From the NCBI GenBank assembly GCA_013416795.1, contig RQSC01000027.1:248001-312000 (forward strand): 64,000 bases of DNA, written 5' to 3'. Shown in pieces: positions 43,222-61,950 of this stretch. Below the pieces are notes generated by a model that was given only the letters and a program-made list of their open reading frames with translations, was not told where the DNA came from and did no database searches. Within the stretch, counting starts at the first letter, position 1. Every line of letters begins with the position of its first letter. Made by a program: the position numbers and the translations under genes. This DNA comes from Prasinococcaceae sp. CCMP 1430 (Eukaryota; Plantae; Prasinodermophyta).

Positions 43222-46200
43222 TCAGTTCCCAAGGGTTGGGACGATTTTTTTCGAGTGCCTTTTGGTTCTATTCGGCGAGCCGAGCAAATTGCGAAAGAGA
43301 CGCGCGCCGCGGCTCTCCCTCTTCGGGCTCGACTGCGTGCTCTTGTTGTCGGGCTCTGGCGGGGTTGAGTGCACGAAGGGCGGGCTGGGGCGCGTACTCG
43401 ACTCGCTAGTGCCGATGAATGTCTCGTACAGCTTGCGGCCCGTGACTGCCGCGCCGGCCTTGAGTATGGACCACACGATATCCCTGCGCACAGTGCCAAG
43501 CAGGTCCCTCCAGTCACCCTGCGCAACGCATAGGGGAGGGGTGGCACGGTTAGCACCACGGGGCTACGTGGACGACCATCGTCTGCCACGGCAAGGGCGA
43601 TGCGGGCGCGCATGCTCGCAGCGCGAGAGGCAGGCATCCTTGCGCACCTCGTACGAGTGGAAGACCCTCGGCGGGAGCTGAAAGTGCGCTGAGGAGAAGC
43701 TGAAAGGCGAGCCCGCATATGCGATCACGACCTTCACCTCATTCATGCGGATGTAGTCCGCCGTGACGCGCGTGGCAATGCTGTCAGCTGCACGCGGCGT
43801 CGGCGTGGGGGTGCTCTTGAGCCGCCGCGCCGCGGGTGGCGGCCCAGGGTCGGCCACTGCATTGAGGCTATCGACGCCCATCCTGGCAAGGACGCTGGCA
43901 TCAACTGACATGGACCGCGTGTGCTTCAGCTTGCGCTTGGCCACCCCTTTTGGTAGCCGCGATGGGCCGACATCCGATGACGGGTCGAAAAGCGAGCTCG
44001 CGTCGTCGCTGCCTGCCGAAAATGTCGATGGGATCTTGTCCGAGTCTTGTCGCCTGTGCCGCGCCGCCGAGCCTCCCCCCTTGAGGGGCGAAAACGCAAG
44101 GCCAAGCACCGTCTCCGACCGCTGACGGCGGTGGTTGAACTTCGAGTTGGAGCCGGGCGCAGGCGGCAGGGGCGCGCCACCGCCGCGCGGATGCGGGGAT
44201 GCAGGTGCCACCGAGCGCTCGCCGGATGCCCCCGTGCGGCTGGCGGTTTCAGCCCAAAGCGGCCCGAGAAAGCGTTCTGCCCTGAACATCAGACTCTCGG
44301 TCACATTGATGGACAGCGGGAAGACCTGTGTCTCCAGGTGCGTCAAGAAGGTTTTGCCAGGAACTGATCTGCCCTGCTCAGCACGCACGCGCAGCATGAC
44401 GTCACCCTTGCCCCAACCCGCATCCTCGTGCACCCCAAGCACGCGCCACATGCCCTGACTCGGACTGCCTGAATCGGTCGAGCAACCGCTGCTCATTCGA
44501 CCGGTCGACCGTCTACTGCTTCCCCCAGACTCGGCGCCGCTGCCGACGGCGTCCACCCAAACCTTCGACACAGTTGCAATGACCTCAGCGCTCCTGTCCT
44601 CGTGGCGTGCCATCGACAGCGTCGCGCCCCGCAGCTCAACTGTGGAGAAAGGCGCAGCGCTGCTCGACGGACCACTGTCGAGGATGTCGAAGCGCGCGTC
44701 GCCGAGCGACGCTTCGACATAAACAGCCGCCGGGCGCGCGCCCTGATTGTCGTTGCCTCGGCGAGCAATCCTCTCGCGTCTGGCTGAAGCAGCCATATCG
44801 AGTACGGTGCAAAACTCACGGCCGTGCTCGCTGACCTTGTGCCGCAAAGACTCCCCAAGCGGCAACACCAGGGCGTCTGCTTTGGACGATACCATCCAGA
44901 AAGGATCTGCATATGCGATGGCGTCGGCGGGGCCTTGTCCGTGCGTGGCGAGCAGCAAATGTCGCGCGTTGGCCATGTCGGTCAGGAGGCGCGCATCTGC
45001 CACCAGCGCACAGGCGACGGTCCTAATCTCGAGGCCACTCCCACGCACGAGAGACGCTGCTCGCAAGGCCTCGTGCACAGCGGGCGCGGACACCGGCGAG
45101 CGGCGGAAAATAACGTCCATGCGACTTCCGAGGGTCAGAGCGGCGCCGACAAGCACAGAGAACTGGTGTCCGTCGACAGCGACAGCCAAAGACGGCGAGT
45201 TCACGACGACTTCGGTCTGCTCAGCCACAGCGGCCTCGGGCGGCGTGAACTTGCGCACGCTCAGCCCCACGCGACAGCCCTCACCGCTGATGTTGCGCAT
45301 CGAGGCAGTGCTAGCGGCGGACTCGCCATTCTCTGGCGCCCACGAAAAGGTCGCGCCGGGATTGACGTCGTTGCGCGCCACCCAGGTCCTCACATTCTGC
45401 AGATTTAGCGAGTACGACGTCAAAGTGCCGCCTTGGTCGAGCATCCCATGGCGACCAAGCAAGCGCGCCTTGCGCGATTCGAGGAGCAAGTGGCCCTCGC
45501 TGGCCGAACCAGACTGCACGCACAGTTGCGCCTTGGAGACATCAACGACGAGAAAGATCGGATCGGCGCTTTCGGGGATCGCCTGGTCATGGGCGGGGCT
45601 CGTGAACTCATCCTCGTTCGTCTCCAGATGCTTGCCTTCGGCTCTGAGCTCGGATGTCAATACACCGCGGTTCAACAAGGCGAGCAGGTCATCTCCCTTC
45701 GATTCGAAGGACTTGCCGAGGGTGCGAGCGCGACGCGCCACCTGCGGGGCTTGCCCCGGAGATGACCCCGCACCGCTGCTCTGCCGACTGGACAGGCCAT
45801 GTGACGGGCCGTGGCTCAAGATGGATGCCGCCAGCGCGGCAGCCGCACGCCCCGTCCGCGAGGCGTACGGGTGCCGCAGGCCAGCGACCGTCCCGAGCCA
45901 GCATGCCATCACGGACGCACGCGTTTGGTCGGTCCACATCATGTGGAGACCGACAATGGCAATGCGCAAGCACGTGGACGGCTCACTGTCGCGAACGGCC
46001 TGCCCAAGCCTCGGGGGGGTGCCCTGGCGCACCAGCATGGCTTGCAGGGCCTCGCGGTCGTCCGGCTCGAGATCTTTCATGCTCAGGTTTCCGTGTAACC
46101 GTTGGCGGACAGAGAGGCTCGAGGCGGACGCGACAAACGTGTCCCTGTTGTCCTGCGTCCATGCGGCCTCGTCGCAAGCGAACCCCTGCCCAGAGCTGCA

Positions 46201-49200
46201 CACATCGTCAAGGTCCAGATGGACACGGACGGACAGCAGATCAACTTTGAGCTCATCGAGTGTGTTGGCAACGAATCGCATCATCACAGACAGGCTCTTG
46301 GCACGGCCGTGGAGCGAGTACAGCTCGATGTCCTGGTCCTCACTCGGTAGCCCGGCGACGTCGAACGTCGTCGCCAGTGGTTCGACCTCGAGTTTGAAGG
46401 TACTCTCCTCCAGAATTGAGCCGAGGGAGCGACCGCGATGTCCTCGCCTCCCCGACGATGGAGCTCGTCCGCACGTGGGTGTCTGGGGCGAGGGCGTCGC
46501 GACAGCAGGCTTGCTCGAGCGCAGAGGCGAGACCTGCACCACCGACACTGGCGGACGAACGATCGCAAGCACGAAGGCCTTGAAACGCATCATGGACTCG
46601 GGAGCGAGGGACAGGTGCGCGCCCCTTCCAGCAGCATCTTCGCTTCCCGGATCGCCCCGCACCCGCATCAGCACCGTTGCTTTCACTGCTGTCGCTCGGA
46701 ACGCCCGCATGCGCCGCTGAAGATTCGTGATAGCAGAGCACCTGCTCGGCGGCGTCCAGCGCGGCGTCAGAGACTCCTGGTTGACGGTGTCTGGGGTGAA
46801 GGCGTGCAGGAAGTGTTGACTTGGGTCATGATCGAAGCCGCACTGCCAATCCATGCCCATGGAAAACTCAGCTTCAGGGGCGCGCAGCAACTCCACTGCC
46901 TCAAGATCCTCTACGTGGCTGATGCGCACATTCTTGCTACGAACGACGAGCGAGGAAGGTGGTGCCACCTGGATGGCGGCGCCCGATGCCACCGATACGA
47001 GCCGCTGCGACCGCTCCCCCTCCCCGAGCGCACCGCACCCGCCGAGGATGGTCAGCGATGCATTGCTCACCCAGATGTCAATCTGCCCGTGCACGAGGAG
47101 GCGAAGGTCGTCCCACCAGGAGAACGCTGCCTGAGACGGCGGTGATATGAGGGCCGGGGGAGATGGCACGGGAGGCACGCTAATGGTGAGTTTGGGGCGC
47201 TGGGCGCTGTCTGCCTTGAAGGGTGAGGGCGTGGGCCCTACGTACGCTAGGTCTCCACTCGCGGCGTCGCCATCTCTGCCTCCCTCCGAGCTGTGGAAGG
47301 ACATGGCTTGGATGACGTCGCTGAGGTCGGCCTCATACCCAGGCCCGCACACAGCCCTACCGTCCTCGACAGAGACTCCCACATCGACGTAGAACTTCGT
47401 CGGTGGCGAGTGCGGTTCAAGGGCTGATTCGACCCAGTCCAACGTGTGGCCTAGGCTGACGCGACGTTGCTCAGCCTTCGCGCACGCGTTCTTGCACTCA
47501 CTTGCAAGCAGGTTGCCGCGTACCTCGGCGACGCCGGCAATGACTCCGTACGTGTGTCCAGAGGTGAGCTGCGCGAGCGGCGATGTGTGTTGCCGAAAAT
47601 GCAGGGACGCGGCACCGGAAGTCATGCTGAAAGCAAATCCCCGAGCGCGGCTCTCGTCAAGCTCCACCTCGCGCGCCGCAGGGTCTACAGATCGGGCCAC
47701 GGCAATTGCCACCGCGGGTCCTGAGAGGCGTGACACGCGCAGCTTCATGTCAACGCATGTCGCCGCAACCATGCCATGCGGCGGTGGGAGCGCGTAGCCT
47801 TGCGCGCTGGCCAAATGCGGGGGATAGCGAGCGTTCGCTGCCATTGAAGCCGTTTCCCACGCCCGCTTGAAACTCGCGAAGAGCGTGTCGTCCAAGCGCG
47901 CTCGGGCACCGACCAGCTCTGCGTCACCACCATCGAGCTGCTCTCGCGCGGCCTGCTCGAAGAGCGCCTCGCGAGCGACGCGCTCGGGAAGCGTGGCAGC
48001 CATCGCAGCGGCGCGAATAGCCATCCATCGCTCCAAAGGCGAGTCTTGCAAAGACGTTGTCAGACGCGCGATGTTGAATTGCAACACGGGCCTGATACTG
48101 CCCTGGATTTTGGTGGGAGATCGCAGGCCATTGGCAGCATCAAACGCAGCCTTCACTGCGTCGGCAGTACTCGTGATCATGTCCATCGTCTCGTCCACCG
48201 CATTGTACGTGGCGCGGAGTCCTGTCGTAAGCGGCGCATCCAAGGCCAGCATGCTTGACTCGAGCAGCCATCGAGCCGCCGGCGCCAGCACCCTCCGAGC
48301 AGTCTCGGCGACAAAAGGAATGCTCGGTGGACGGAAGGGGGCGTCATCCAGACCTGGGCACGTGACGCCGGATGCTGCATCCTCCGCTAGTAAGTATGAC
48401 GGCGGGCGGACAGTCAAGTCCGCGGCCGTCAGCATTCTGTGTCCATCGACCTCCACAGCCAGGCGCTTCAACATTACCACCGTCGACGTGCCGAAGCGCT
48501 CGAGCGCCGAAGCGCGCACCACGAACGCCTTGCCGTTCATCAGCGCAATGACAGCGCACGCATCCTTGATTTGAAAGGACAAAGAGACCACGAGGGGAAT
48601 CTCAGGGGCAACACCACTCCTTGTTGTGTCCACGTCGGCGCTCGCTCTCACTGTAGCTGCCACCGCCTGCAGTGCCACGGCCACGCAGCGCACGGCCACG
48701 CAGGTCTCGACGTCGACGCACGCCTCGACGCCGGAGACGAAAATGTGCGTGCGGGGCATGCTGTCACGCTCGCAGGCCGCTGAGTTGTCCTGGGGCCAAC
48801 GCGCCGCCAACGACGCTGAGTCGACAGTGAGCAAAGCCGACGAGCCCGGCACCTCACTGGTGCCCTGGTAGCCGCGCACCCATGTCTGAGAGAGCAGGAC
48901 ATCCGTGGACAGCGGCACGCCGCCCTCCACCAGCTCGCCACACACCTCCATCTCGCCTACAACGACAGACGTTGCGAAGTCAAGGCAGGCGCATCCATCG
49001 CTCTCACGCGGGGGGTCATCCTGGCCGCGCACCACCAAGGATGGCATCGCGGGGGCTGTCGTCAATACCTGCACCTCCACTTGCACCAACCTCACGGCAA
49101 AGTTCACCCCCCGCATCGATCCCCTCCGTTCGGAATGAACAGAGGTTGCACGCGGCGCGCTATGCCCGGTCCCTTTACGCCACTGCTGCGACATGCCTGC

Positions 49201-50997
49201 GAAGAGCTCGAGCTGCTTGGTGTGCACGCAAGCCCGCGCCCCTCTGATCTCGAGCTGGATGTCATGGGGACCGTGCTGCAGGTCTTCAGGGGGGAACTCG
49301 AGCGAGGTCACCACGGACGCTGCCTGCAACAGCGGCCACGCCGAGCTGTCCAGCCGCAAGTCTGCGCCACTCATTAGCACCGTGACCTCAGCGTTGTCGT
49401 TGGTTTCTCGCACGGGTGACGGAATCACTGCTGTCACGTGCATGGTTGCGAGCTGGAGAGACGCACTGTCCCCTTGCAGTTGCTCTGGTTCTGTGAGCTG
49501 TAGCTGCCACCCCTGCCCCTCAAGACTGAATGTCCAGTCAAGGGACTTGATGTGCGACACGATTGAATGCTCCTTGACCTCGGCCGCCATTTGCGTGGAC
49601 TGTCGTGCCCGTCGTATACGCTTCAGCTGGACGTGCACACGCCTTACGTCGTCGACCCAATGCAGCAGAGCAGGTCGGTGTACCGCGCTTGCATAGTCTA
49701 GCTGCATCTGCATGCTCGCACTCAGCTCCCTCGCAGCCGGTGTACCGTTGTCCGGCCAGCACGTCGCGTCGATGGGAAGCGGCACATCCACTGTCACCGA
49801 TGTGCTAGAGCTCCAAACCATGCTGAGCGCCTTCTCAGCCGTCGCAACTTCTCGGGGCCGCGAGGGATACCGCGCGTTCTCAGCCCGCAGGACGACCCTG
49901 GCCCTCGAGCACGCCGAGGAAAGTGACGCACGCCAGCAGTCCCGGTCAAACTTAACTGCAGTGCGAAGGGCAGAGCACTCGGCTTCGATGGGACGTATGG
50001 TCCTGCCTTCAGGATCTTCCATGAGCACGCACACACCAATCGAGCAAACCTGCAGCGACAGCTCTAGCGGGCACCCCTCAATCAGCTCGAGGAGGTCAGC
50101 CCCACGGTCTGCACTCTCGCCCGCGTTGCCACGTTGGTCGACCTCGGCGACTCGCAGGGCGGCGTGGGCTCGCACGAGCACCGCAGCGTCCGAGCATGAA
50201 ACTGCAACACCGCTGCACAAACTCTCAACAGCATTCAGCCGCAGCATTGCCTGCACCTTCAAGTGCTCGAGGTCCGCATCGACGACATCCGTGGAAGCGC
50301 AGACGTGTCCCATTATTGCGACCACGTTGGCAGACTCTGGTTGCAGCGTCACGCAGCGCAGAGACATGTTACGCACGCCCACATTCCCGGTGGCCGCGCG
50401 GGTATCCGCCGCGCCGCTGAGGTGCACTGTCGCGTTGACGACGCGGACCTCGACAAGCTGCGCGAGCCGCTGCAGCGCGCCGAACTTGGCCTCATCGATG
50501 CGCCTCCCGAGGAGCCGCACGCCCTCGGCGCGCCTCTCGGAATTTTCCGATCCGAGCTTGTGCCGCTCCCTCCTGGCGTCGGCCGCTTGCTGTCGTTGCC
50601 GCGCCCTCCTTTGCTGCTGCTCCGCCGCGCGCTGCCTGGTGCCAGCAGCATCCAAGCTCGCGAGCACGACTTCGACGTCTTTGACGACGACCGGGAACGC
50701 AGCGCCGCCCCTCGCAAATGCGAGCTTGAGCACCGATATCCACGACGGCAAGAGCGCGATCTCGCCTACCCTGAGCGACTCAATCACACCATTGCCGCGT
50801 TCGAAGGCGACGCTCACGCCACGCAGCTTCCATTCCGCCGGTGACGCGTGCCTCACTGACGCGCGCGCGCCAGGGACGAGCCCACGTAGCCACACGGCGA
50901 CGCATGCGCCCAGTGCCCGCCGCGCCCAGTGGTGGACCGCGTGGACCGCGACGAATGCGAGCGTGAGCAGCACCGCAGCGGCAACTGCTGCTCCCAT
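43222..50997 (-). CDS. Bridge-like lipid transfer protein BLTP2 (SABRE/KIP/KIAA0100/Fmp27 family). Exons 50997-43648, 43518-43222
   Basis: About 2550 aa with an N-terminal TM anchor. Family-like FSWWDDLRLLVHG, and C-terminal YIRMNEVKVVIAYAGSPF...SYE/GDWRDLLGTVRRDIVWSILK joined by a phase-0 GT-AG intron. Confidence 0.85.
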
Positions 50998-51636
50998 CGC
51001 GCCCGGGTACAGCGCAGCCCCCTACGCCGTATCCCCCTTCCCTCCCTTCCCAGCGTGCGCCTGCGCGTGCGCGCGCCACGCTGGCGTTTTCCTCCTGCGC
51101 GTGTTTCAAACGCCCACGAGGGCCGCCGGGTGCACCGGCCGCTGCCGCCAAAGCCGGTCTCCGCAGCGGCAACCCGCAACCCCCGGGCGGCCCTCGCGGC
51201 GGCCACGAAGGGTGCTGCGGCGGCGACCGCCGCCGCCGCCGCCGCGCCAGGGAGCGCCGCGCGCGCCCGCGCGCGCGCGCACGCGCCGGGCGCGCGCACT
51301 GTGGCTGGCGCGCAGTCGTGTCTTCGCGCCGCACAAGAAGACACGCAAAAGTACAGTAAAAAAAGTGCCGTCTGGCATCTGCCATCGAATGCCATTGAAC
51401 GTGCCATGAATGTGCCATGTGCCATTAATTGGCATGTGGATCAGGACCAGTCCAGGCGGCACTGACAGGACAGCTTGGGCTTCGGCGCTGGCCCTGGAGC
51501 GAGATCTGTGATCTGTGGTTTGTATTATTGATTACGTCACCCACGGCGTAGCCCTTGCACGCGCGCGCGCGCGAGTGCGACCGCCTCGGCGCCGCGTGTG
51601 AGCGTGTGGCGCGGACGCACGCCGCGAGGCCGGCAG

Positions 51637-52997
51637 GTCGTCGCCCTAGCACCGCCGCTCTGGCGCTCGCGCTCGCCGCCGACGTGGCACTGGGCGACTA
51701 CGATGCGTCGGCGCGCATGGCAGCGAGCGCGCCGTGCGCGGGCGCGGTGGGATCCGCCGCCGCGGGAGCGCATGACGTGGGGGACAGGCGGCCCGGCTGG
51801 CTCGGGGCGTTGCGCGCGAGCCTCGAGGGAGTCGTCAGCTGGGACGCGGTCCACCTGCAGCGAGCGGCGAGATGCGGCTACGAGTACGAGCACAGCCGCG
51901 CCTTCTATCCGGGCGTGCCCCGCGCGCTCGCTGCGATAGCGAAGGCGCCAGGCTTTGGCGCGGCGCGCACCGCCATTGGCGAGGCTGCGACGATGTCGGC
52001 AATCTCACTCGTCATGAGCCTGCTGTGTACAGTGGTTGCCGCCGTCGCGCTGCATCGCCTCACAACGCGCCTGTGGCGCGACGGCGTGCTGGCGGACTAC
52101 AGCGCGGCGCTCTTCTGCGCGTCGCCGGCGTCGCCGTTCCTCGCGCTGGGGTACACGGAGGCGCCGTTCGCGGCGCTTAGCATGACGGGGCACGTCGCGA
52201 TGGCCTCGGGGCACGCGGGTCTTGCGACGCTCCTGTACGCGCTTGCCGCGACGACGCGCTCCAACGGCGTGCTCAACGCAGGCCACGCCTGGTGCGCAGC
52301 GCTGCTCTACTCGCTCCACTCCGTGGCGACGCGTGCGGCGCCGCGCGAGCGCGCGGCAGCAGTGGCAGGGGCGTGCACTGCCGCGGCTGCGCTCTCGTTG
52401 CCTGTGCTTGCCGTGCCCGCGTGGGTGGAGCTCGATGCGCATCGGGCGTTCTGCGAGGGTGCCAGCGGCACAGTCGAGGCAGTGCGGCCGTGGTGCGCGC
52501 GCTGGCCTCTGACGTCTGCGTACGGCTTCATCCAGGCGCAGTACTGGGGACAGGGCCTCTTCTCGTTTTGGCGGCCCGAGCAGCTGCCCAACTTTGCGAT
52601 GGCGGCGCCTGCGCTCCTTCTGGCGCTCGCGTCGGCGCGGTGGGGCCTCGGCCGCTGCACCGACGCGTGGCGCGAGCGAGGGCTTGAGACACTCGGCGCG
52701 GGCAAGCGCTTGCGGGTGCTTGGTGCGCCGCTGCCGCTCGTGGCCCCAGCGGACGCGCAAGCGCAGGCTGGGGCGCTCGCGCACTTCGTGCAGCTGGGCG
52801 CGATGGCGATTGTGGCGGCTTGCTGCATGCACGTGCAGGTGGCGGCGCGCTTCATGTGCGCGCAGCCGGCCCTGTATTGGTACGCGGCGAGCGTCGCCAT
52901 GCGTGGCGGCTCGCGCGCCGCGGCGCTGTGGGCTTACTTCCTGTGCTTCGGTGCGGTCGGTACTGTTGCGTTCGTCAACGGCTTACCGTACGTCTGA
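51637..52997 (+). CDS. PIGV: GPI mannosyltransferase 2 (PIG-V/Gpi18); 5' end unresolved
   Basis: DYDAS, WDAVH...GYEYEHSRAFYPG, YTEAPFA, RSNGVL, IQAQYWGQGLFSFW...QLPNF and QVAARF..AQPALYW; multiple TM segments. Confidence 0.85.
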
Positions 52998-53052: not shown

Positions 53053-53607
53053 TCAGGTGGCACATGCGTGCCCGCACTGGCGCACGTGCGCTGGCGCGGC
53101 GGACGGCAAATGCGACGCGCCTCCGCGTGACGTCATCGCGACAAAGAACTCCCTGGCGGAGAGCCTCCCGTCGCCATCCTCGTCGAGCTCCTGGAATGCC
53201 GCGTCCAGCTCGAAGGCGAACTCCGCACCGCGCTCAGCGAGCAGGCCACACTCCTTGGCGGCGCGCTGCAGCGCCTCGCGCGAGATATGTCCCTCGCAGC
53301 GATCGTCAAGCGCGCGGAACGCCTCGCGCACCGCGGCCGCGTCGGCATCCGCCGCAGCGAGCGGCAGCGCTCGTTCCTGGGCGTACCTCCCCAGGGCGGT
53401 CGCGGTCACGCCCGCGTCCCCGCACGCGCCCACTAGCGCGTCGATCTCAGCCGCGCACGGCACGCGCCCCGTCACCGCTGCGAGCGCGCAACGCACGCCG
53501 TGCCGGTCGAGCGCGCCCTCCCGCCCGCCTCCACCCGCACGGCAGAAGCGCGCATGCGCGGCCGTCGCGTGATCCACCACGCTTCCTTGCAGGCCCGCCG
53601 CCGACAT
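53053..53607 (-). CDS. EF-hand calcium-binding protein (EFCAB11-like)
   Basis: VREAFRALDDRCEGHISREAL and canonical AFQELDEDGDGRLSAREF EF-hands. Confidence 0.75.
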   Translation of the reverse strand: MSAAGLQGSVVDHATAAHARFCRAGGGGREGALDRHGVRCALAAVTGRVPCAAEIDALVGACGDAGVTATALGRYAQERALPLAAADADAAAVREAFRALDDRCEGHISREALQRAAKECGLLAERGAEFAFELDAAFQELDEDGDGRLSAREFFVAMTSRGGASHLPSAAPAHVRQCGHACAT

Positions 53608-53868
53608 CGCGCCGGCCTGCCCGCACCCCGCCGCGCCTGTGGCGCGCAGCGCCCCTGCGCTCTGTGACGCCAACGCTGCACGAGCTGCGCGCGACAACGC
53701 CCGCCAGCGCGCGATTCAAAAAATGCAAACCCTGATGTGACTTTCAGACTGTTTGGACGTCTTTTGCACTCAAATCAACGTCACGAACCTCAAAGTTTTC
53801 AAAGTGTTTAAGACATGCAAAACATCATCGATGTGACTCTAACCCTAACATGTCGCCACTGCGCGCTG

Positions 53869-56800
53869 TCATGTGCCCGTGATATCGCCGCTTGTGCTTG
53901 GAGGACGCAGCGGTTCGCTCGCCCTGCGGCTCAAGGCCCGTATCTCGGCCATTCGCTCACCCGCCACGACCTGCACCTCCTCGAGTGCCGCGGGATGGCG
54001 CTGAACGGCCTCCTGCCACTCGTCGCGGTCGAGCCGGAGAAGCTGGCATCCCTCGTCGCCCGTCACGACCGTTGCGACGCGAAGGCTGTCTGGGTTTAGA
54101 AGCGCCATCTCGCCAAAGTAGTCGCCCGTGCGAAGAATTTTCTGGCCCTCGCCGTCCGTGATGGCGGAGTCGCTCCCGCTTCTCGCCATTGACTTCCCAG
54201 GATCTGCGTCGTGCAGCTGCACAATCGCGCTGCCACTGTGGATGAAGTACATCGAGTCCCCCCGATCACCGCGTCTGACGACGACCTCGCCAGGATCCAT
54301 TGTCTCAAGCGCGAGCTCGGCAAAGAGCTCGTCGCAAAGCTGCGGGTGGTGCTGCATGAATGGACACTCGCGCAAGAGCTGGGCAACGCCACGGGTGAGA
54401 AAGAGAGTGCTTGCTTGGCGCGTTGTGGCTGTGCGCCTAATTGCACGCAGCGTGTCGGGAAAGTTCGCCATGACGTGGCTAAAGTCGTCCTCGTTGAGCA
54501 CCAGCACTTGCACGCCCCTCTCGCCAGCACGCACGTCTGCATTGCGCTTGCTGTGGGTTTCGATGAGCGCGCCCTCGCCGAAGAAGTCGCCTAATTTGAG
54601 GCGTACCACGCCACTGCGCGAAGCGCCGCCGCGTTCATGGGCGCGCGCGCCCGAGCTCCGAACCGACGCATCCTCAGGGATCGTCGCGGGCGCCGAGCGC
54701 CGCGAGCTCCGCAAGGTCTTGCCCGCTTTGCTTGGCAGAAGAACTTCGGCAGTGCCGTCGTAACAAAAGAACATCTCCCGCCCGATGTCGCCTCTGCGCA
54801 CAATGTACTCTCCCGGTCGATACGATCTGAGTTGCATGCGCGGGAAAAGAGCGACCGCGACCTCTGAGCCCTCGTCGCCTTGCGAGAAGAGCGGGCATAC
54901 CGCGACGATGCGAGCAGCGTTGTGCATTGCGTTCTCAGTCTGCCTGCCCTCTGCCGTCGTGGACACCTTCTCGGCAAAGTCGGAATCTCTGATGAGGATG
55001 GCGTCCCTGTCGTCCTTGTCGAGCTTCATGAGCTCGCACCGCGGACTCTCAACGATGATGCTGGCCGTGCGCCCAGTGTCTGTAGCCATCTCGCCGAAGA
55101 ACGCGCCCTGGCCGAGCCCAGCCACGCGGTCACCCGGCAGCTTGAGCTTGCCGTCGTCGCCGTCGGGCTTGGCGACGTACACACCAAGCTCACCCCTTGT
55201 GACAAAGTAGACGCCGTCGCTGGGATCCCCCTGTCGGAAGACGTGCTTGCCCTTGCGCAGCTTGACCGAGTGAAGTGCGTCCAGGATCTGCTGGATGGAC
55301 TGAAACGACAGCCCGCTGAGGCTCGGCAGCTGGAGAAGCGTTCTTCCCAGGATGTCCAAGTGGTTTGGTTTATGCGCGCGGACGAACGCGGTCAGCAGAT
55401 TCGTCTGTGCCAGCTGTTCCATCCACTCCTTGTTGCGCTTGTCGCCGCTGACACCCTCGACCATGGCGCCTTCGAGAAAGAGACGGAGGCGCTCGACAGC
55501 GCCATCCGGCGCGGTCACAGACTGGGTTATCACATGCGCTTCGACGTGGGTCATCAAGGCACCAATATACTCGCGCATCACGCCGAGGAACTGGTTTGCA
55601 GCGGTAGCCTGGGCAGCCGTGACAGAGTGAAGAGGCCGAGAGGGCGGTGCACGGGACATGTACGTCGAGCTTTCGCTGCTGCCGGCAAACGAGACCGGGC
55701 GGCGCAGGCCGATGCCAAACATGCCACCGCCGCCTCCGCTCTCGGCAGGCAGCCCCTCGCGTGCGACGACGCGTCCTTCGTCCCACAAGATCTGGTGGCT
55801 TCCATGCAGGGCCGCTGCTAGGGCGGTCGCACCCGGCAGCGTGGGAAGCATCCCGGGAGCCTTGACTTTGTTCGCGGAAAGGTCGCAGATGACGAGGCGG
55901 TCCTTGTCGACGCCCGTCGCCTTTCCCGCCCGCTTTTCGTCCGGCATACCGACGACGAAGCCGTGCGTGCGCCCTTTCTGCACGCGGCGCTCGAAGCCGG
56001 GCCCAACGATGGGTACGAGGTTCGACATGGGAAGAAGCGGCCAAAGCAGGGGCGCCAACGCGAGCACCGAGGCCGTCAGCACGCCCAGGTTCTTGTGAGT
56101 CAGAACAACAGGATATTCCAGCAACGCCGCACTCATGAGGAGGAGGCAGTTGTCCACGCTGAGCGTGGCGCAAAGCGCCGGGATAGCCCAGGTCGCAATT
56201 GCTGATGCCTCCTCAGCCTCCTGCGCCCATCTCCTCGGAGGCATGCCGTCTTGCAGCGGGAGGCCGCCTGCTCCACGCTCCAGCACCGCGTGGGCGGCGC
56301 TGTCTCCGTGCTCCGTGGGCACGTCAGCGCGCGGGACGCGTAGCTCAGCGCCACTGTCCTTGAAGTGCCCGATCTCCCCCCTCAAGGGCACTCGCAACTT
56401 GTGATAGGCGCGCAGCGTGTCGTCGGGCGGAGCGATGCCGGCCACTTTGCCGCCGCAGAGCGCCCCAAGGCACCTCAGCCGCTGGCGCTCGGCCAGCGCG
56501 TGGAGCACATTCCACGTGGTGGTGAAGAGCGCCTGCCGGGTCAGGAAGCAGTATACGCGCCTGGTCACGACGAAGCGGCGTTGCCGCCCGCCCGCCATGC
56601 GAGCTGCGCCCGTCGCTGCCTCCCTCCGAAAGCCGTCGCTGTCCTCGCACAGCAGGGGCGGCGCGTCCAGGAGCTCGTCGGCAGCCAGGCACACAACCCA
56701 GAACGGGCGCCTTCCACCCATTTGCGCGCCTGGTTGGAATCGCAGCAAGTACGCTCCCTCAGTGGACTCGAGCGCCCCCTTGCGCATCGCCATGTCATCG

Positions 56801-57531
56801 AGCGCCCCGGCCAGCAGCGGGCTGCCCTGCGCACCGGGCAGCGCCGAGCAGCGCGCGCCCGCGGGCATGACCATTTCTGGAAGGTTTTTGAGAACCCGGC
56901 GCAGATTGGCGCCGCGTACGCCATCCCCGTCGTTGGTCCCATACGCATGGATCCTGCCGGTGCTATTGAATGTCTTGCCGGGCGCAAACGCGGACAGCAG
57001 CACGGGCTTCTCCATCCATGCCAGCGTCCCTCCGCCGCGGCGCGGCGTGCCCTTCGACTGCCCGCTGGGTGGCTTCGCACCAGGTGGTGCGCCCACTACC
57101 GCGAAGAGCTCGTAGGCGGGATCCGAAAGCTGCGCAGCGGTCGCGGCTGCGGGTGACAGCGAGATGCCGGTGGCGACCTGCATGAGCGCGCTTCCGGCCC
57201 TGCCGCTCTGCGGCGTCGCGGGCGTTGGAGGTGACGCCATCGCGGAGGTCACAGATGGAGAGGCACTTGTCGCCTCCGAGGCCGCCGACGCGTGCCTCGA
57301 GTATGGTGGGCTCGACGCACTGACACTGCCGCTCGCCGCGGAACTCGTTGCCGCATGGGTTGCGCGGTCGCGGCTCTCGGCCTGCGCCACGACTGCCAAG
57401 AATTCCATCTGCCAACCGAGCATCTCGGGATCGCGCAGAGCAATCTCCTCAGTCAGCTTGAACTGCCGCCGGCGCTTCACTTGCCGGCGGAAGCGCCGCG
57501 CGATGCGCTCCCACATTGTGAACACCCCCAT
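53869..57531 (-). CDS. DENN-module (Rab GEF family) protein with three C-terminal cyclic-nucleotide-binding domains
   Basis: DENN: YELFAVVG, NLPEMVMPAG, RRVYCFLTR, VDNCLLLMSAALLE..VVL..KNLGVL..SVLAL.PLL.PL, REYIGAL. CNB: VFRQGD..DGVYFVTRG..FFGEMA..RTAS; IVRRGD..EMFF..G..FFGEGAL..RNAD; VVRRGD.GDSMYFIHSG..YFGEMAL..RVAT. The frame is uninterrupted. Confidence 0.85.
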   Translation of the reverse strand: MGVFTMWERIARRFRRQVKRRRQFKLTEEIALRDPEMLGWQMEFLAVVAQAESRDRATHAATSSAASGSVSASSPPYSRHASAASEATSASPSVTSAMASPPTPATPQSGRAGSALMQVATGISLSPAAATAAQLSDPAYELFAVVGAPPGAKPPSGQSKGTPRRGGGTLAWMEKPVLLSAFAPGKTFNSTGRIHAYGTNDGDGVRGANLRRVLKNLPEMVMPAGARCSALPGAQGSPLLAGALDDMAMRKGALESTEGAYLLRFQPGAQMGGRRPFWVVCLAADELLDAPPLLCEDSDGFRREAATGAARMAGGRQRRFVVTRRVYCFLTRQALFTTTWNVLHALAERQRLRCLGALCGGKVAGIAPPDDTLRAYHKLRVPLRGEIGHFKDSGAELRVPRADVPTEHGDSAAHAVLERGAGGLPLQDGMPPRRWAQEAEEASAIATWAIPALCATLSVDNCLLLMSAALLEYPVVLTHKNLGVLTASVLALAPLLWPLLPMSNLVPIVGPGFERRVQKGRTHGFVVGMPDEKRAGKATGVDKDRLVICDLSANKVKAPGMLPTLPGATALAAALHGSHQILWDEGRVVAREGLPAESGGGGGMFGIGLRRPVSFAGSSESSTYMSRAPPSRPLHSVTAAQATAANQFLGVMREYIGALMTHVEAHVITQSVTAPDGAVERLRLFLEGAMVEGVSGDKRNKEWMEQLAQTNLLTAFVRAHKPNHLDILGRTLLQLPSLSGLSFQSIQQILDALHSVKLRKGKHVFRQGDPSDGVYFVTRGELGVYVAKPDGDDGKLKLPGDRVAGLGQGAFFGEMATDTGRTASIIVESPRCELMKLDKDDRDAILIRDSDFAEKVSTTAEGRQTENAMHNAARIVAVCPLFSQGDEGSEVAVALFPRMQLRSYRPGEYIVRRGDIGREMFFCYDGTAEVLLPSKAGKTLRSSRRSAPATIPEDASVRSSGARAHERGGASRSGVVRLKLGDFFGEGALIETHSKRNADVRAGERGVQVLVLNEDDFSHVMANFPDTLRAIRRTATTRQASTLFLTRGVAQLLRECPFMQHHPQLCDELFAELALETMDPGEVVVRRGDRGDSMYFIHSGSAIVQLHDADPGKSMARSGSDSAITDGEGQKILRTGDYFGEMALLNPDSLRVATVVTGDEGCQLLRLDRDEWQEAVQRHPAALEEVQVVAGERMAEIRALSRRASEPLRPPSTSGDITGT

Positions 57532-57720
57532 TGCGCCGACCTCTTGACGTGGTACCGCACAGGGCGGCGCCTTGCGTTTCCCCCCAGAGCACGCGGCCGG
57601 AGCAACGCGGTCGCTGCACGCCCGGCCCGGCGCGCCGCACGAGCCGCGCCGCGCGGCACGCCTGACGCCTGCGCCCGCGTTCTCCCCAGACGGCAGAAGC
57701 CTCGCCCGCAGTGCGCCACG

Positions 57721-57765
57721 CCGAGCCGAGCCGAGCCGAGCCGAGCCGAGCCGAGCCGAGCCGAG
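57721..57765. repeat. (CCGAG)9 microsatellite upstream of the DENN-CNB gene
   Basis: Nine perfect CCGAG units read directly. Confidence 0.92.
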
Positions 57766-58227
57766 CGATGCGCGCTGTGGCGCGCCCGCACGCGCGCGCG
57801 CACTCACGGCCCAGCTCGCAACAGCCTCGCACACACGTGCTGCGTGCGTGCTCGCTCGCCTGCATCATCGGCAGTGCATCGCTCCTCTCCCTTCGCGGGA
57901 CGCTCCTACGTCACACGCCGCCCGCGGCAAAAGAATCAGGGCAATGCATCGATGCCTTCCATACGTACTTTCCTCACGGCGTATATTCGTATGCGCGTCC
58001 ACAGGTCAGGCGCACGCTCGCCGCGGCGCGCTTGTCGTATTTGGCGCGCGCGCGCCGCTTTTTCGCGTTTCGAAAGCAGTGCCGGCGCAGCGCGCGCGCG
58101 CGGCACACCCGGCGCGGGCGGCGCGAACAGCCGCCCTCGGTCTGAAGGCAGGCCTCTGACGCGGAGCGCGCGGGGCAAGGGGTGGGGGGCGCACGCCTCA
58201 CGCGCCGCGCGCGCGGCCGCGGAGTGT

Positions 58228-60052: not shown

Positions 60053-61827
60053 TCACTCAGCGTGGCAGCTGAACGGCATCCCCCAGGTCTTGCTGTCACG
60101 AACTGTGTGAGTCAGATTCGAGTACAGGCCAAGCACCATGAGCACGAGAGTCATTGCGATCAGCGCGAACTGACCCACTCGCTCGAGCGTGGACAGCTGC
60201 AGGACACCCCTGGTAGCTGCCGCGAGCGCCAGCGCCGCCGGCATGCCGAAGCTGATGTTGGATGCCATGAGCGAGCCGATAATGCCCGTCAGGTCATCGA
60301 AGAATGGCACACCGTTGCTCACAAAGATGCTCCACAGTAGCACGCCACCTGAGATGACCGCCCAGTGCATTCGCCCTCTGGTGCCACGGTCCTCCACTGT
60401 CGCTGGCGAGACGCGCACATGAATGAAGCGCGAAAGCACCTGACTTGTGATGAGGTAGCTGATGACCATGTGCACGAGCATGAAGCCATTGGCGAATCGC
60501 TTCACCGTACCATCCGGCAAGGACTCCATGATGTTGGCTGGAGTCGCCGCTCCCAGGTGCCCGTAGCCCACCAGGCTTACGAGGAGATATATTCCCACCA
60601 TGAAGGGCGCCGCAGCAAGCAGCGCGCGCGGGAAGTGTGCGGGCGTGCACATCTCGGCGATCACTGAGCCGCAGAGAAGTGGAGGTCAGGTACGGCACGC
60701 GGGTCAGCCCAGGCGCACGTGCGCGCACGGCGGCGACAGTAGGCGTGTGCTCGGCGCGGGAGTGGATGTCACAAAAACGACACGAGGGAGGATGCACATA
60801 GGCGAGCGGGCGCCCGCGCCCGCGCGCGCCCGCGCGCCTGCGAGCGCTACGCACTCTCCAAGAACACCGACTGGCCGGCATACGCAAACACGATTCCAGT
60901 GAGTGCCGTAAACTTGTCCATGAAGCTCGAGTTGGCCACCCACACCGGCCCCACGTACTCCTCCACAGTGTCACCGTAGTCGCCGATGCCGCCCCCAGCT
61001 TCGGTTGCCTGCGCAGGAGGCGGCGCCGCGCCAACCCCGCCATCGCCCTCGTCCGAGTGCACGCCTAACCCCCGACCCGCCATGAGCTCGACCATGCAGA
61101 TGCCGACCGCCAAGAGGATAGTCACGGCAGAGACGGCAGACAGGCCCGCGAGGCTGTGCAAGCTGCGCAGCTGCACTGGCATCACAAGCAACAAGCCCGA
61201 CACCACGCTCGCTGGGAGCAAGCATAGTCGCTTGCCGACAGCGAGGCCCTGGACCGCCTCGGCGAGTACCAGCACGTATCCGCCGAGGACAGAAAGAAAA
61301 TACGTGGCCATGAAAGCGTGGCCCATCTGCGCCCAGCGCCGCCCAGCCGCCACGCCGGCGAGCTCGCCATACGAGAGCGCGTTGGGGTACCGCAGCGACA
61401 ACCGCGAGAGCATCCAGCCCGTGTACAGGTTGATGGGTGAGAACAGCACGATCAAGAACATACCGGGCCCCCAGCCGAGCTTGCGTACGTTGCCGGGCAG
61501 TTCGAGCACGCCCGTGCCGACGGTGTCTGCGATGAGAAGCAGCGCAACGTGCCACCACTGCGAGCGGCGCTTGGGCGCCGGCCCTGCTGCTGGCGTACCA
61601 TTGAGCTCGAGGCCGTCGCTGCTTCTCGACGGCCTGCCATCCAGCAGCTCGACGGTGTCGAAGCCGTCGAGATTCGCTGCCACGCTGCTGTGCGTGCTGC
61701 TGTTGCCGGTGCTGCCTCCGCGCGCGCGCGTCCCGGCATGGGAGCGCAGCGGCACGCTCTCCTCATCGACGCCCCCACCGCCGCCGTTTCTCGCGTCCAG
61801 CTCGGCGACGTCCGCATCCACTCCCAT
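60053..61827 (-). CDS. Amino-acid/auxin permease (AAAP, Aa_trans family) transporter. Exons 61827-60855, 60663-60053
   Basis: SQWWHVALLLIADTVGTGVLELP...LGWGPG, IVFAYAGQSVFLE/MIAEM..P..FPRAL, VGYGHLG and VPFFDDLTGIIGSL; about 11 hydrophobic segments; phase-1 GT-AG intron. Confidence 0.9.
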
Positions 61828-61950
61828 ATGCGTTCACGCCCCACACCACCGCCGGCGTGAAGGGGGGAGACGCTCGGCGGCACGAGACCGTGTGTGCGCG
61901 CGTGCGTGTGTGTCTCGCGAGCCGCGCGGCCGGCGCGGCGCGGCGGCCCG

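Follow-up and report, generated by a model that had tools for sequence, protein, structure and literature searches.

The window analysed here, a stretch of 64,000 nucleotides, harbors on its reverse strand a stop-free frame (positions 57834 to 53869) whose first ATG, at 57531, opens a coding sequence for 1220 amino acids with a third-position GC content (GC3) of 0.77 along the full ORF (Table 1). The absence of introns from this frame, proposed in the first-pass annotation, is borne out by a co-linear Prasinoderma coloniale contig (L008) that runs past both ends of the ORF, beginning 95 nt ahead of the ATG and extending 30 nt beyond the stop codon, and that equals the window sequence save for one assembly gap (ten Ns and a 4-base repeat). 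The public gene model of the ORF (PRCOL_00002454, P. coloniale, 1214 aa) contains an 18-nt GT..AG gap, for which neither this contig nor the orthologue provides support. The locus is thus a real gene, consisting of one exon and expressed in P. coloniale, a marine green alga, and its product is a soluble protein of 1220 residues in which a DENN module precedes three cyclic-nucleotide-binding (CNB) domains.

Table 1. Features of the DENN-CNB gene and of its product, in window coordinates.
Feature	Residues	Position	Strand	Basis or remark
Probable 5' UTR, 95 nt, without upstream ATG		57532..57626	(-)	Reach of contig L008
Complete CDS, 1220 aa and stop, no intron		53869..57531	(-)	ORF, GC3, contig L008, Tara alleles
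N-terminal region	1-60	57352..57531	(-)	Polybasic helix-like stretch and conserved segment
Ser/Ala/Thr/Pro-rich low-complexity linker	61-135	57127..57351	(-)	
uDENN (longin-type), with lineage-specific loops	136-352	56476..57126	(-)	
uDENN-cDENN linker	353-434	56230..56475	(-)	Lower pLDDT; 56% identity between species
cDENN core	435-600	55732..56229	(-)	Pfam DENN, relatives, AF2, Foldseek
Diverged cDENN segment	501-532	55936..56031	(-)	Family motif WQS..LP..LD.LDAPVPF replaced
Gly-rich loop	~601-640	55612..55731	(-)	Low-confidence part ~600-620, pLDDT <50 (model residues 465-485)
dDENN	641-722	55366..55611	(-)	Profile match, pLDDT 85-96
dDENN/CNB-A junction	716-760	55252..55386	(-)	82% identity between species vs ~60% overall
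CNB-A	726-862	54946..55356	(-)	Pfam stretch 756-846; cassette G813-E814...R821-T822-A823
CNB-B	863-1040	54412..54945	(-)	Pfam; cassette G985-E986...R996-N997-A998
CNB-C	1041-1200	53932..54411	(-)	Pfam; cassette G1140-E1141...R1151-V1152-A1153
3' UTR start, as spanned by contig L008		53839..53868	(-)	

That this fusion is an artefact, produced by misassembly or by read-through of two adjacent genes, is hardly credible. Nothing was found in its support, the 18-nt gap of the public gene model being the one discrepancy, and the identical, uninterrupted ORF of the window recurs in several Tara Oceans metagenomes that were assembled independently. Moreover, the sister-species metatranscriptome contig L007, which is spliced relative to its genomic counterpart L001 (a 331-nt GT..AG intron near codon 20 has been removed), carries a full DENN-CNB ORF of 1195 residues, and the P. 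singulare transcript A0A7S3C680 sets in at the end of uDENN and continues through to the stop codon. DENN and CNB domains thus occur together in both transcripts and in the co-linear contig, as expected of a single transcription unit, and a search for a break at their junction revealed no stop, frame change or shift in composition. This junction is the most conserved stretch of the protein, and a linker is almost absent from it.

The DENN-CNB architecture is kept under purifying selection in two Prasinoderma species. The orthologue of the second species retains every domain at 60-62% identity, and alleles from the Tara ocean metagenomes, all of the same length as the window ORF, differ from it by 29 synonymous and 12 non-synonymous substitutions (pN/pS 0.14). 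Conservation is lower in the first 135 residues (35% identity between species, with 41 gaps, 36 of which stem from the shorter called start of protein P0002), and within residues 1-60 the segment TEEIA..DPEML.WQ..FLAVVAQAE.RDRA is kept in the full-length orthologue P0017. N-myristoylation at Gly2 was considered and rejected because the site is not conserved, the orthologue beginning with MVLG. A conserved gene neighbourhood was likewise discarded, as P. singulare-type contigs carry different flanking genes; in P. coloniale-type contigs an EF-hand gene adjoins downstream.

The DENN module is complete, with a tripartite uDENN-cDENN-dDENN organization, but divergent. The span assigned to it at first pass (~57115-55370, residues 139-721) agrees with the boundaries established here, and its claimed completeness holds when family profiles and structure prediction are considered, whereas Pfam alone recovers only part of cDENN: the DENN profile (PF02141) matches residues 449-517 with 26 bits, above its cutoff of 23.4, the orthologue scores exactly at that cutoff, and no uDENN match was obtained with Pfam anywhere in the 1220 residues. 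For uDENN, hhalign to the corresponding region of a green-lineage family gave a probability of 92% (E 6e-7). When residues 136-728 were modelled in AF2 from an alignment of mixed fragments (A4), uDENN stayed below a pLDDT of 50 because its fragments had been misaligned; with a dedicated alignment (A7), in which the uDENN motifs line up, the model reached a pLDDT of 78.6 and a pTM of 0.79. Although Foldseek returned no significant match for the isolated uDENN model, VIA-align placed DENND1A (residues 7-126) at the top, with a middling Z of 7.8 (rmsd 3.4, 101 residues aligned), followed by other longin and roadblock domains, among them, more weakly, the longin domain of FLCN. The cDENN core, modelled with a pLDDT of 85-97, is the best-matching region across the 149 listed relatives described below, and profile positions 517-608 of dDENN match the terminal segment of relatives bearing Pfam dDENN. 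Taken together (~435-725), these two regions match DENND1A/Rab35 (6ekk) in Foldseek with an E of 2.4e-6, and DENND1B (3tw8) as well as 8p0v with probability 1.0; matches at this probability comprise DENND1A/B-Rab35 and DENND10, with C9orf72-SMCR8 and FLCN as weaker ones. Against solved structures, the family sequence profile identifies DENND1A (E 4.6e-16), while a single-sequence phmmer search with cDENN-dDENN gave no significant match to DENND1B (E 2).

An exhaustive HMMER search with the DENN part returned 177 matches among 1.84 billion representatives, of which 149 are listed. None of these 149 relatives, which represent the DENN subfamilies within reach of HMMER, carries a CNB domain. A word-indexed homologue search recovered only the two Prasinoderma clusters and was too insensitive to be informative. 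The nearest relatives, which Pfam recognises as uDENN/DENN/dDENN proteins, come from Bryopsis, Caulerpa, Psilotum, Vigna and Trifolium; they end within ~5-10 residues of the dDENN match, near the point at which CNB-A begins here, whereas the Prasinoderma protein continues for ~500 residues. The DENN module is derived from this green-lineage DENN family, whose members ordinarily stop after dDENN. No CNB-less paralogue labelled as Prasinoderma was found among the Gly/Ala/Arg/Pro-rich matches, most of which are unnamed. Published accounts of DENN evolution (PMC3521125) and of the P. coloniale genome (PMC7455551) mention no DENN-CNB architecture, and our literature search located neither a paper describing the combination nor a functional study of the nearest green-lineage DENN family. 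The initial statement that no DENN-CNB protein has been characterized is consistent with these results, since none, characterized or merely annotated, emerged from the relatives or the literature searched. As far as seen, the union of a DENN module with three CNB domains is found in no other organism or paper searched and is confined to one genus.

The C-terminal part of the protein matches the Pfam cNMP_binding profile (PF00027) with an E of 3.2e-43 (146 bits, positions 2-86 of 89). The matches fall in four stretches that correspond to three domains, the second being split by a 42-residue insert, and the three repeats proposed at the outset (~55335-54980, ~54900-54460 and ~54370-53990, equivalent to residues 733-851, 878-1024 and 1054-1181) concur with our boundaries. 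The FGE...R-x-A cassette reported for each of them is present as well: Gly-Glu and Arg-x-Ala are found in all three domains, and the same residues recur in the P. singulare-type orthologue. Structures matched by the CNB domains overall comprise PKA-R, PKG, HCN, Epac and SthK. CNB-A, the most conserved domain (77% identity between species), retains Gly-Glu and the arginine when aligned to CNB-A of PKA RII-beta; residues 864-936 of CNB-B match HCN2 and HCN4; and CNB-C matches PKA-R, PKG, Epac2 and HCN structures with the cassette aligned. As predicted cyclic-nucleotide sensors, the three domains thus look intact, with ligand-contact residues present, although ligand preference is not readable from them because the residue following the cassette arginine differs in each (T, N and V).

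It is nonetheless conceivable that these three folds are not cyclic-nucleotide switches. They would then have a different ligand, or no ligand at all, and form a constitutive module for autoinhibition, dimerization or docking, as in PDZ-GEF, in KCNH channels or possibly in NTE/PNPLA6, with the DENN module regulated by other means. The CNB folds of PDZ-GEF and KCNH channels do not bind cyclic nucleotides, and arrays of at least three CNB domains with obscure ligand roles exist, the nearest to the present triad being patatin-CNB and chytrid multi-CNB proteins at 21-26% identity. In addition, the insert of CNB-B (residues 934-975, window positions 54607-54732) is only 14% identical between species, and CNB-C is conserved at just 52%. 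Degenerate CNB domains, however, usually lose the arginine or the glutamate of the cassette, and here both are kept in every cassette of both species, with CNB-A as the best-conserved domain of all. We regard a non-switch role as improbable.

A different doubt concerns the output of the protein. Compared with the green-lineage family, the two Prasinoderma proteins keep 28/39 and 26/39 family-conserved positions, fewer than any of 46 family members (minimum 74%), and 8 of the 11 lost positions fall within residues 501-532 in both species. There, W501 is replaced by P and P510 by G or A, A519-P520-V521 is lost, P524 is changed to G and K532 is lost, while F525 and G528 are retained; the segment does not conform to the pattern WQ..IP.LP...AP.PF..G, and pLDDT is lower within it. 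These losses might indicate that cyclic nucleotides are sensed by the CNB array while the DENN module has ceased to catalyse exchange, acting instead as a platform for a Rab/Arf-family protein, a GAP-complex-like component or a scaffold, in which case the ligand would steer binding, localization or complex assembly rather than catalysis. Some proteins with a DENN fold are not GEFs: FLCN (in FLCN-FNIP) and C9orf72-SMCR8 are GAPs or GAP components and DENND10 is a Commander subunit, and the weaker structural matches to C9orf72-SMCR8, FLCN and its longin domain point in the same direction. Yet DENND1A/B, which are true GEFs, rank first in both the fold and the profile comparisons, the entire module is under purifying selection and, elsewhere in cDENN and dDENN, family residues are kept (W448, C454, L470-L471-E472, N481, G483, P494 and P498, among others). 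We regard the loss of exchange activity as unlikely.

Of the readings considered, we favor, tentatively and with not quite even confidence, that the protein regulates a Rab GTPase and is itself under the control of cyclic nucleotides. In such a scheme, the CNB array would keep the DENN module less active or occluded in the absence of ligand, with CNB-A, whose N-terminal helices would abut dDENN, as the chief holder. Binding of cAMP or cGMP would shift CNB helical elements, as it does in PKA-R and Epac, and this shift would alter Rab access to, or nucleotide exchange by, the DENN module, so that the second messenger might act directly on a trafficking step with no kinase between. We counted in favor of such coupling the identity between species of the junction (82%) and of CNB-A (77%), and also the fact that the relatives end ~5-10 residues from the CNB-A start. 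Against this reading speak the partial loss of the nearly invariant cDENN segment, the E of 2 against DENND1B, the variable residue after the cassette arginine and the existence of DENN folds that are not GEFs and of CNB folds that bind no cyclic nucleotide.

Second-messenger control of exchange factors is established for the Ras/Rap branch (Epac, GbpC/D), and Rab DENN GEFs are controlled through phosphorylation and autoinhibition; to our knowledge, and in the papers searched, direct second-messenger control of a Rab exchange factor is not known. The more ambitious proposal, that the Prasinoderma protein is the first Rab exchange factor directly gated by cyclic nucleotides, an Epac-type, kinase-free switch that arose independently, with a DENN module as its base, in an early-branching green lineage, is rather doubtful; under it, the diverged cDENN segment might represent a catalytic lobe re-tuned to CNB control. 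A DENN-CNB fusion occurring in nature would offer a testable case of cyclic-nucleotide control over membrane traffic and would name a concrete cyclic-nucleotide effector in the green lineage, where effectors are poorly defined. The gene also provides an entry to a DENN family of plants and algae that is uncharacterised, and its product may lend itself to use as a tool, a Rab regulator switched by a ligand. These prospects are limited by a function that we infer and by an architecture that was seen in a single genus only.

With the green-lineage family, annotated as 'DENN (AEX-3)/UDENN domain-containing proteins', the Prasinoderma protein shares three co-linear regions (E 1e-25 to 1e-17) and most family-conserved residues, but that family ends just past dDENN without CNB, keeps the WQS..LP..APVPF segment lost in Prasinoderma and bears a long uDENN-cDENN insert that is short here. 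Rab GEF activity is established for DENND1 to DENND5, MADD and further DENN proteins, and the Rab35 GEFs DENND1A and DENND1B (connecdenn) provide the best structural match for both lobes and the best profile match among solved structures, albeit at 13-16% identity in structural alignments and with no significant single-sequence match. Their tail carries clathrin/AP2 motifs and is controlled by phosphorylation, with no ligand-binding domain there; in DENND1A and DENND3 the C-terminal region inhibits the rest of the protein, and DENND1A thus shows that a DENN module may be controlled from its C-terminal side. NTE/PNPLA6-type and chytrid multi-CNB proteins, the nearest to the CNB triad, likewise place at least three tandem CNB domains on another module, but their partner is patatin or none, never DENN. 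A covalent link between CNB and a small-GTPase exchange factor is known from Dictyostelium GbpC/GbpD and from PDZ-GEF, the CNB of which does not bind cAMP, yet their exchange domains are of the CDC25-type Ras/Rap class, in contrast to the DENN module of Prasinoderma. Finally, Epac1 and Epac2 (RAPGEF3/4), Rap GEFs autoinhibited by CNB and activated by cAMP, also combine CNB domains and an exchange module, here a predicted one, in a single polypeptide, and the Epac2 CNB domains (1o7f, 2byv, 4f7z) match CNB-A and CNB-C in sequence. The Prasinoderma protein is nevertheless not a member of the Epac/RAPGEF family, as Pfam at E values up to 1 detects cNMP_binding and DENN only, with no match to REM, RasGEF or DEP. 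The 'Epac-like design' first ascribed to it therefore survives as an analogy of logic: Epac combines REM and a CDC25-homology region acting on Rap with one or two N-terminal CNB domains, DEP and RA, whereas the Prasinoderma protein couples a DENN output, presumably directed at a Rab, to three C-terminal CNB domains.

The first-pass annotation had described one frame of 1220 residues uniting a DENN region with three cyclic nucleotide-binding (CNB) domains, and translation of the window yielded a single minus-strand ORF (57531-53869) without internal stop codons, lying in a frame that is open from 57834 to 53869 and in which the first ATG falls at 57531. The GC content at third codon positions (GC3) ranges from 0.72 to 0.85 per 100-codon block, dropping to 0.62 only in the last, partial block, and a compositional seam is thus absent from the ORF; the GC content of the window is 64-74%, in keeping with the 69.8% published for P. 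coloniale (PMC7455551). Pfam profiles match both modules: DENN at residues 449-517, scoring 26 bits (gathering threshold 23.4), and cNMP_binding in four stretches (E 3.2e-43, 146 bits), which correspond to three domains, the second of them broken by an insert. The extents initially proposed for the DENN region and the CNB repeats (residues 139-721, 733-851, 878-1024 and 1054-1181) agree with the boundaries found here. An exact-sequence look-up identified a near-identical protein cluster that holds the EukProt entry Prasinoderma_coloniale PRCOL_00002454-RA (1214 aa), and a second cluster, at 60-62% identity to the window protein, holds Prasinoderma singulare UniRef A0A7S3C680. The sole difference between PRCOL_00002454-RA and the window ORF is an 18-nt GT..AG gap (55815-55832, minus strand) spanning six codons (GATALA). 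Since these codons are present in the 3802-nt contig L008, which matches the window, and the sister-species orthologue has GAEALA in their place, the gap looks like a spurious micro-intron or prediction artefact.

Transcript-derived sequences argue for one gene rather than two. A P. singulare-type contig of 3827 nt (L007) aligns to the genomic contig L001 of the same type as two blocks, the 331 nt between them starting with GT and ending with AG, which identifies L007 as a spliced, mRNA-derived sequence; its 1195-aa ORF is complete and reaches from the N-terminus to the third CNB. This intron of the P. singulare-type orthologue (L001:7364-7694), located after approximately codon 20, is absent from the same place in P. 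coloniale. A P. singulare transcriptome protein starts in the last part of uDENN and continues as far as the stop. L008 is identical to the window apart from a run of Ns and co-linear with it from 95 nt 5' of the ATG to 30 nt past the stop, with no upstream ATG, and the position of its ends suggests that it is also transcript-derived. The same ORF was found in several independent Tara Oceans assemblies, the alleles of which differ from the window by 29 synonymous and 12 non-synonymous changes (pN/pS 0.14). The gene is hence expressed and conserved as a unit, two separate genes are refuted by this combined evidence, and an artefactual fusion is essentially excluded.

The DENN region, proposed to be complete, was recovered in all three of its parts. 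In AlphaFold2 (AF2) predictions, cDENN and dDENN reach pLDDT values of 85-97, and the top Foldseek matches of the DENN model, with probability 1.0, are DENND1A-Rab35 (6ekk, E 2.4e-6), DENND1B-Rab35 (3tw8) and DENND10. The uDENN part was poorly predicted in the same run, but the family motifs are visible in an alignment made for this domain, hhalign gives a probability of 92%, and the AF2 model obtained afterwards has a pLDDT of 78.6 and a pTM of 0.79. A structural search of this model against representatives returned DENND1A residues 7-126 first (Z 7.8, rmsd 3.4, 101 residues), followed by FLCN, sedlin, VAMP7, Mon1-Ccz1 and other longin/roadblock domains; this list is coherent, although a Z of 7.8 is middling. 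The family profile regions and the predicted folds together indicate that the module is complete. Its sequence is also divergent. Among 39 positions that are each at least 85% conserved in 46 members of the green-lineage family to which the module is most closely related, P. coloniale keeps 28 and its sister species 26, fewer than every family member (n=46). Eight of the 11 lost positions fall in the segment 501-532, in which WQS..LP..LD.LDAPVPF, the family motif, has been replaced, and as a single sequence the cDENN-dDENN region has no significant similarity to DENND1B. A module so diverged might bind a GTPase instead of activating it, a leading alternative that we nevertheless regard as somewhat unlikely.

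When a two-sequence profile of residues 136-728 was searched exhaustively with HMMER against 1.84 billion representatives, 177 proteins matched, of which only the orthologue cluster fell below 1e-30, the next ones ranging from 1e-25 to 1e-17. The ten best relatives all carry Pfam DENN, most of them with weaker uDENN and dDENN matches as well. Relatives with a named source belong to Bryopsis, Caulerpa, Psilotum, Vigna, Trifolium and Volvox. By profile similarity, the nearest relatives of the module are thus a green-lineage DENN family, for which a literature search found no functional studies. Family proteins are matched by the profile over uDENN, cDENN and dDENN, as three co-linear regions; these relatives end a few residues past the dDENN match, whereas the Prasinoderma protein runs on into the CNBs. 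In one relative of 1752 aa (P0028), the DENN part is preceded by reverse-transcriptase RNase H domains, probably the result of a gene call that joined it to a retroelement.

Phmmer searches with each of the three CNBs detected none in the 149 relatives listed (of 177). Conversely, querying a word index with the CNB half listed 61 proteins, among which DENN occurs only in the two Prasinoderma clusters, and the nearest relatives outside the genus are chytrid multi-CNB proteins (21-23% identity) and patatin-CNB proteins. The word-indexed searches cover proteins of 671-2135 aa, and rarity is assessed among DENN relatives within reach of the HMMER profile (177 proteins), not across distant DENN subfamilies such as those of protists. 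DENN and cyclic nucleotide-binding domains were not found together in the literature searched, and the architecture is absent from a paper on DENN evolution (PMC3521125) and from the P. coloniale genome paper (PMC7455551). The fusion of these two individually well-known modules is real and, within the reach of these searches, so far restricted to the genus Prasinoderma.

The C-terminal 500 residues match solved structures of PKA regulatory subunits, PKG, HCN channels, Epac2 and SthK. As first noted, each CNB repeat carries an FGE and R-x-A cassette, and these Gly-Glu and Arg-x-Ala ligand-contact residues are intact in all three domains of both Prasinoderma species; the cassettes align with those of PKA RII-beta, the Toxoplasma multi-CNB protein PCR12 and the protein kinase A structure 5j3u. 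The Arg is followed by T, N or V, and a preference for cAMP or cGMP is therefore not readable from the sequence. The insert in CNB-B comprises 42 residues and is not conserved between species. With the phosphate-binding motifs thus preserved, an array that does not act as a cyclic-nucleotide switch, the other leading alternative, seems rather unlikely. CNB-A starts almost directly after the last dDENN helix, and such a short and, judging from interspecies identity, strongly constrained link between the dDENN lobe and the N-terminal helices of CNB-A is what would be expected if the two parts communicate, without amounting to proof. At the opposite end, residues 1-60 (57352-57531, minus strand) comprise a polybasic stretch, RIARRFRRQVKRRRQFKL, possibly a helix that binds membranes or calmodulin, and then a block conserved in the orthologue.

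Features of the DENN-CNB protein and of its gene neighbourhood (identity is that between the two Prasinoderma species)
Feature	Window position	Strand	Residues	Identity	Remarks
uDENN			136-352	59%	
cDENN			435-600	64%	
dDENN			641-722	59%	
DENN/CNB junction			716-760	82%	
CNB-A			726-862	77%	FFGEMAT.DTGRTAS
CNB-B			863-1040	58%	FFGEGAL..SKRNAD
CNB-C			1041-1200	52%	YFGEMALL..SLRVAT
Hobbit/FMP27/BLTP2-family ORF	43567-51021	-			E 4.9e-24; 2485 codons unbroken; further downstream
PIG-V GPI mannosyltransferase ORF	51552-52994	+			E 1.9e-55; GC3 0.85; further downstream
EF-hand protein gene	53056-53697	-			EF-hand_7, E 1.9e-11; ~170-260 nt downstream
Aa_trans amino-acid transporter ORF, C-terminal half	60056-60685	-			upstream
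Aa_trans amino-acid transporter ORF, N-terminal half	60850-61833	-			upstream

Nothing suggests an operon-like functional link between the DENN-CNB gene and its neighbours. The EF-hand gene also adjoins it in Tara P. coloniale-type contigs, and P. singulare-type contigs present a different neighbourhood. The Hobbit-family ORF is a bridge-like lipid-transfer protein gene, apparently devoid of introns, and the two Aa_trans ORFs are probably halves of a single gene with an intron of ~160 nt between them. A perfect pentanucleotide microsatellite, (GCCGA) x 9.4, occupies 57720-57766; it lies upstream of L008, ~95-140 nt from its 5' end, within the divergent intergenic region.

Many DENN modules are Rab GEFs, and in DENND1A and DENND3 C-terminal regions exert autoinhibition; CNB domains, for their part, pass on ligand binding via N-terminal helices, hinge and lid. 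It is quite possible, if far from assured, that a cyclic nucleotide would bind the CNB array, that the bound array would relieve or alter a constraint acting on the DENN module within the molecule, and that the module so freed or altered would control a Rab. Epac is an exchange factor autoinhibited by its own CNB, and the Prasinoderma protein would reproduce this logic of CNB-controlled exchange on a Rab-type exchange module.
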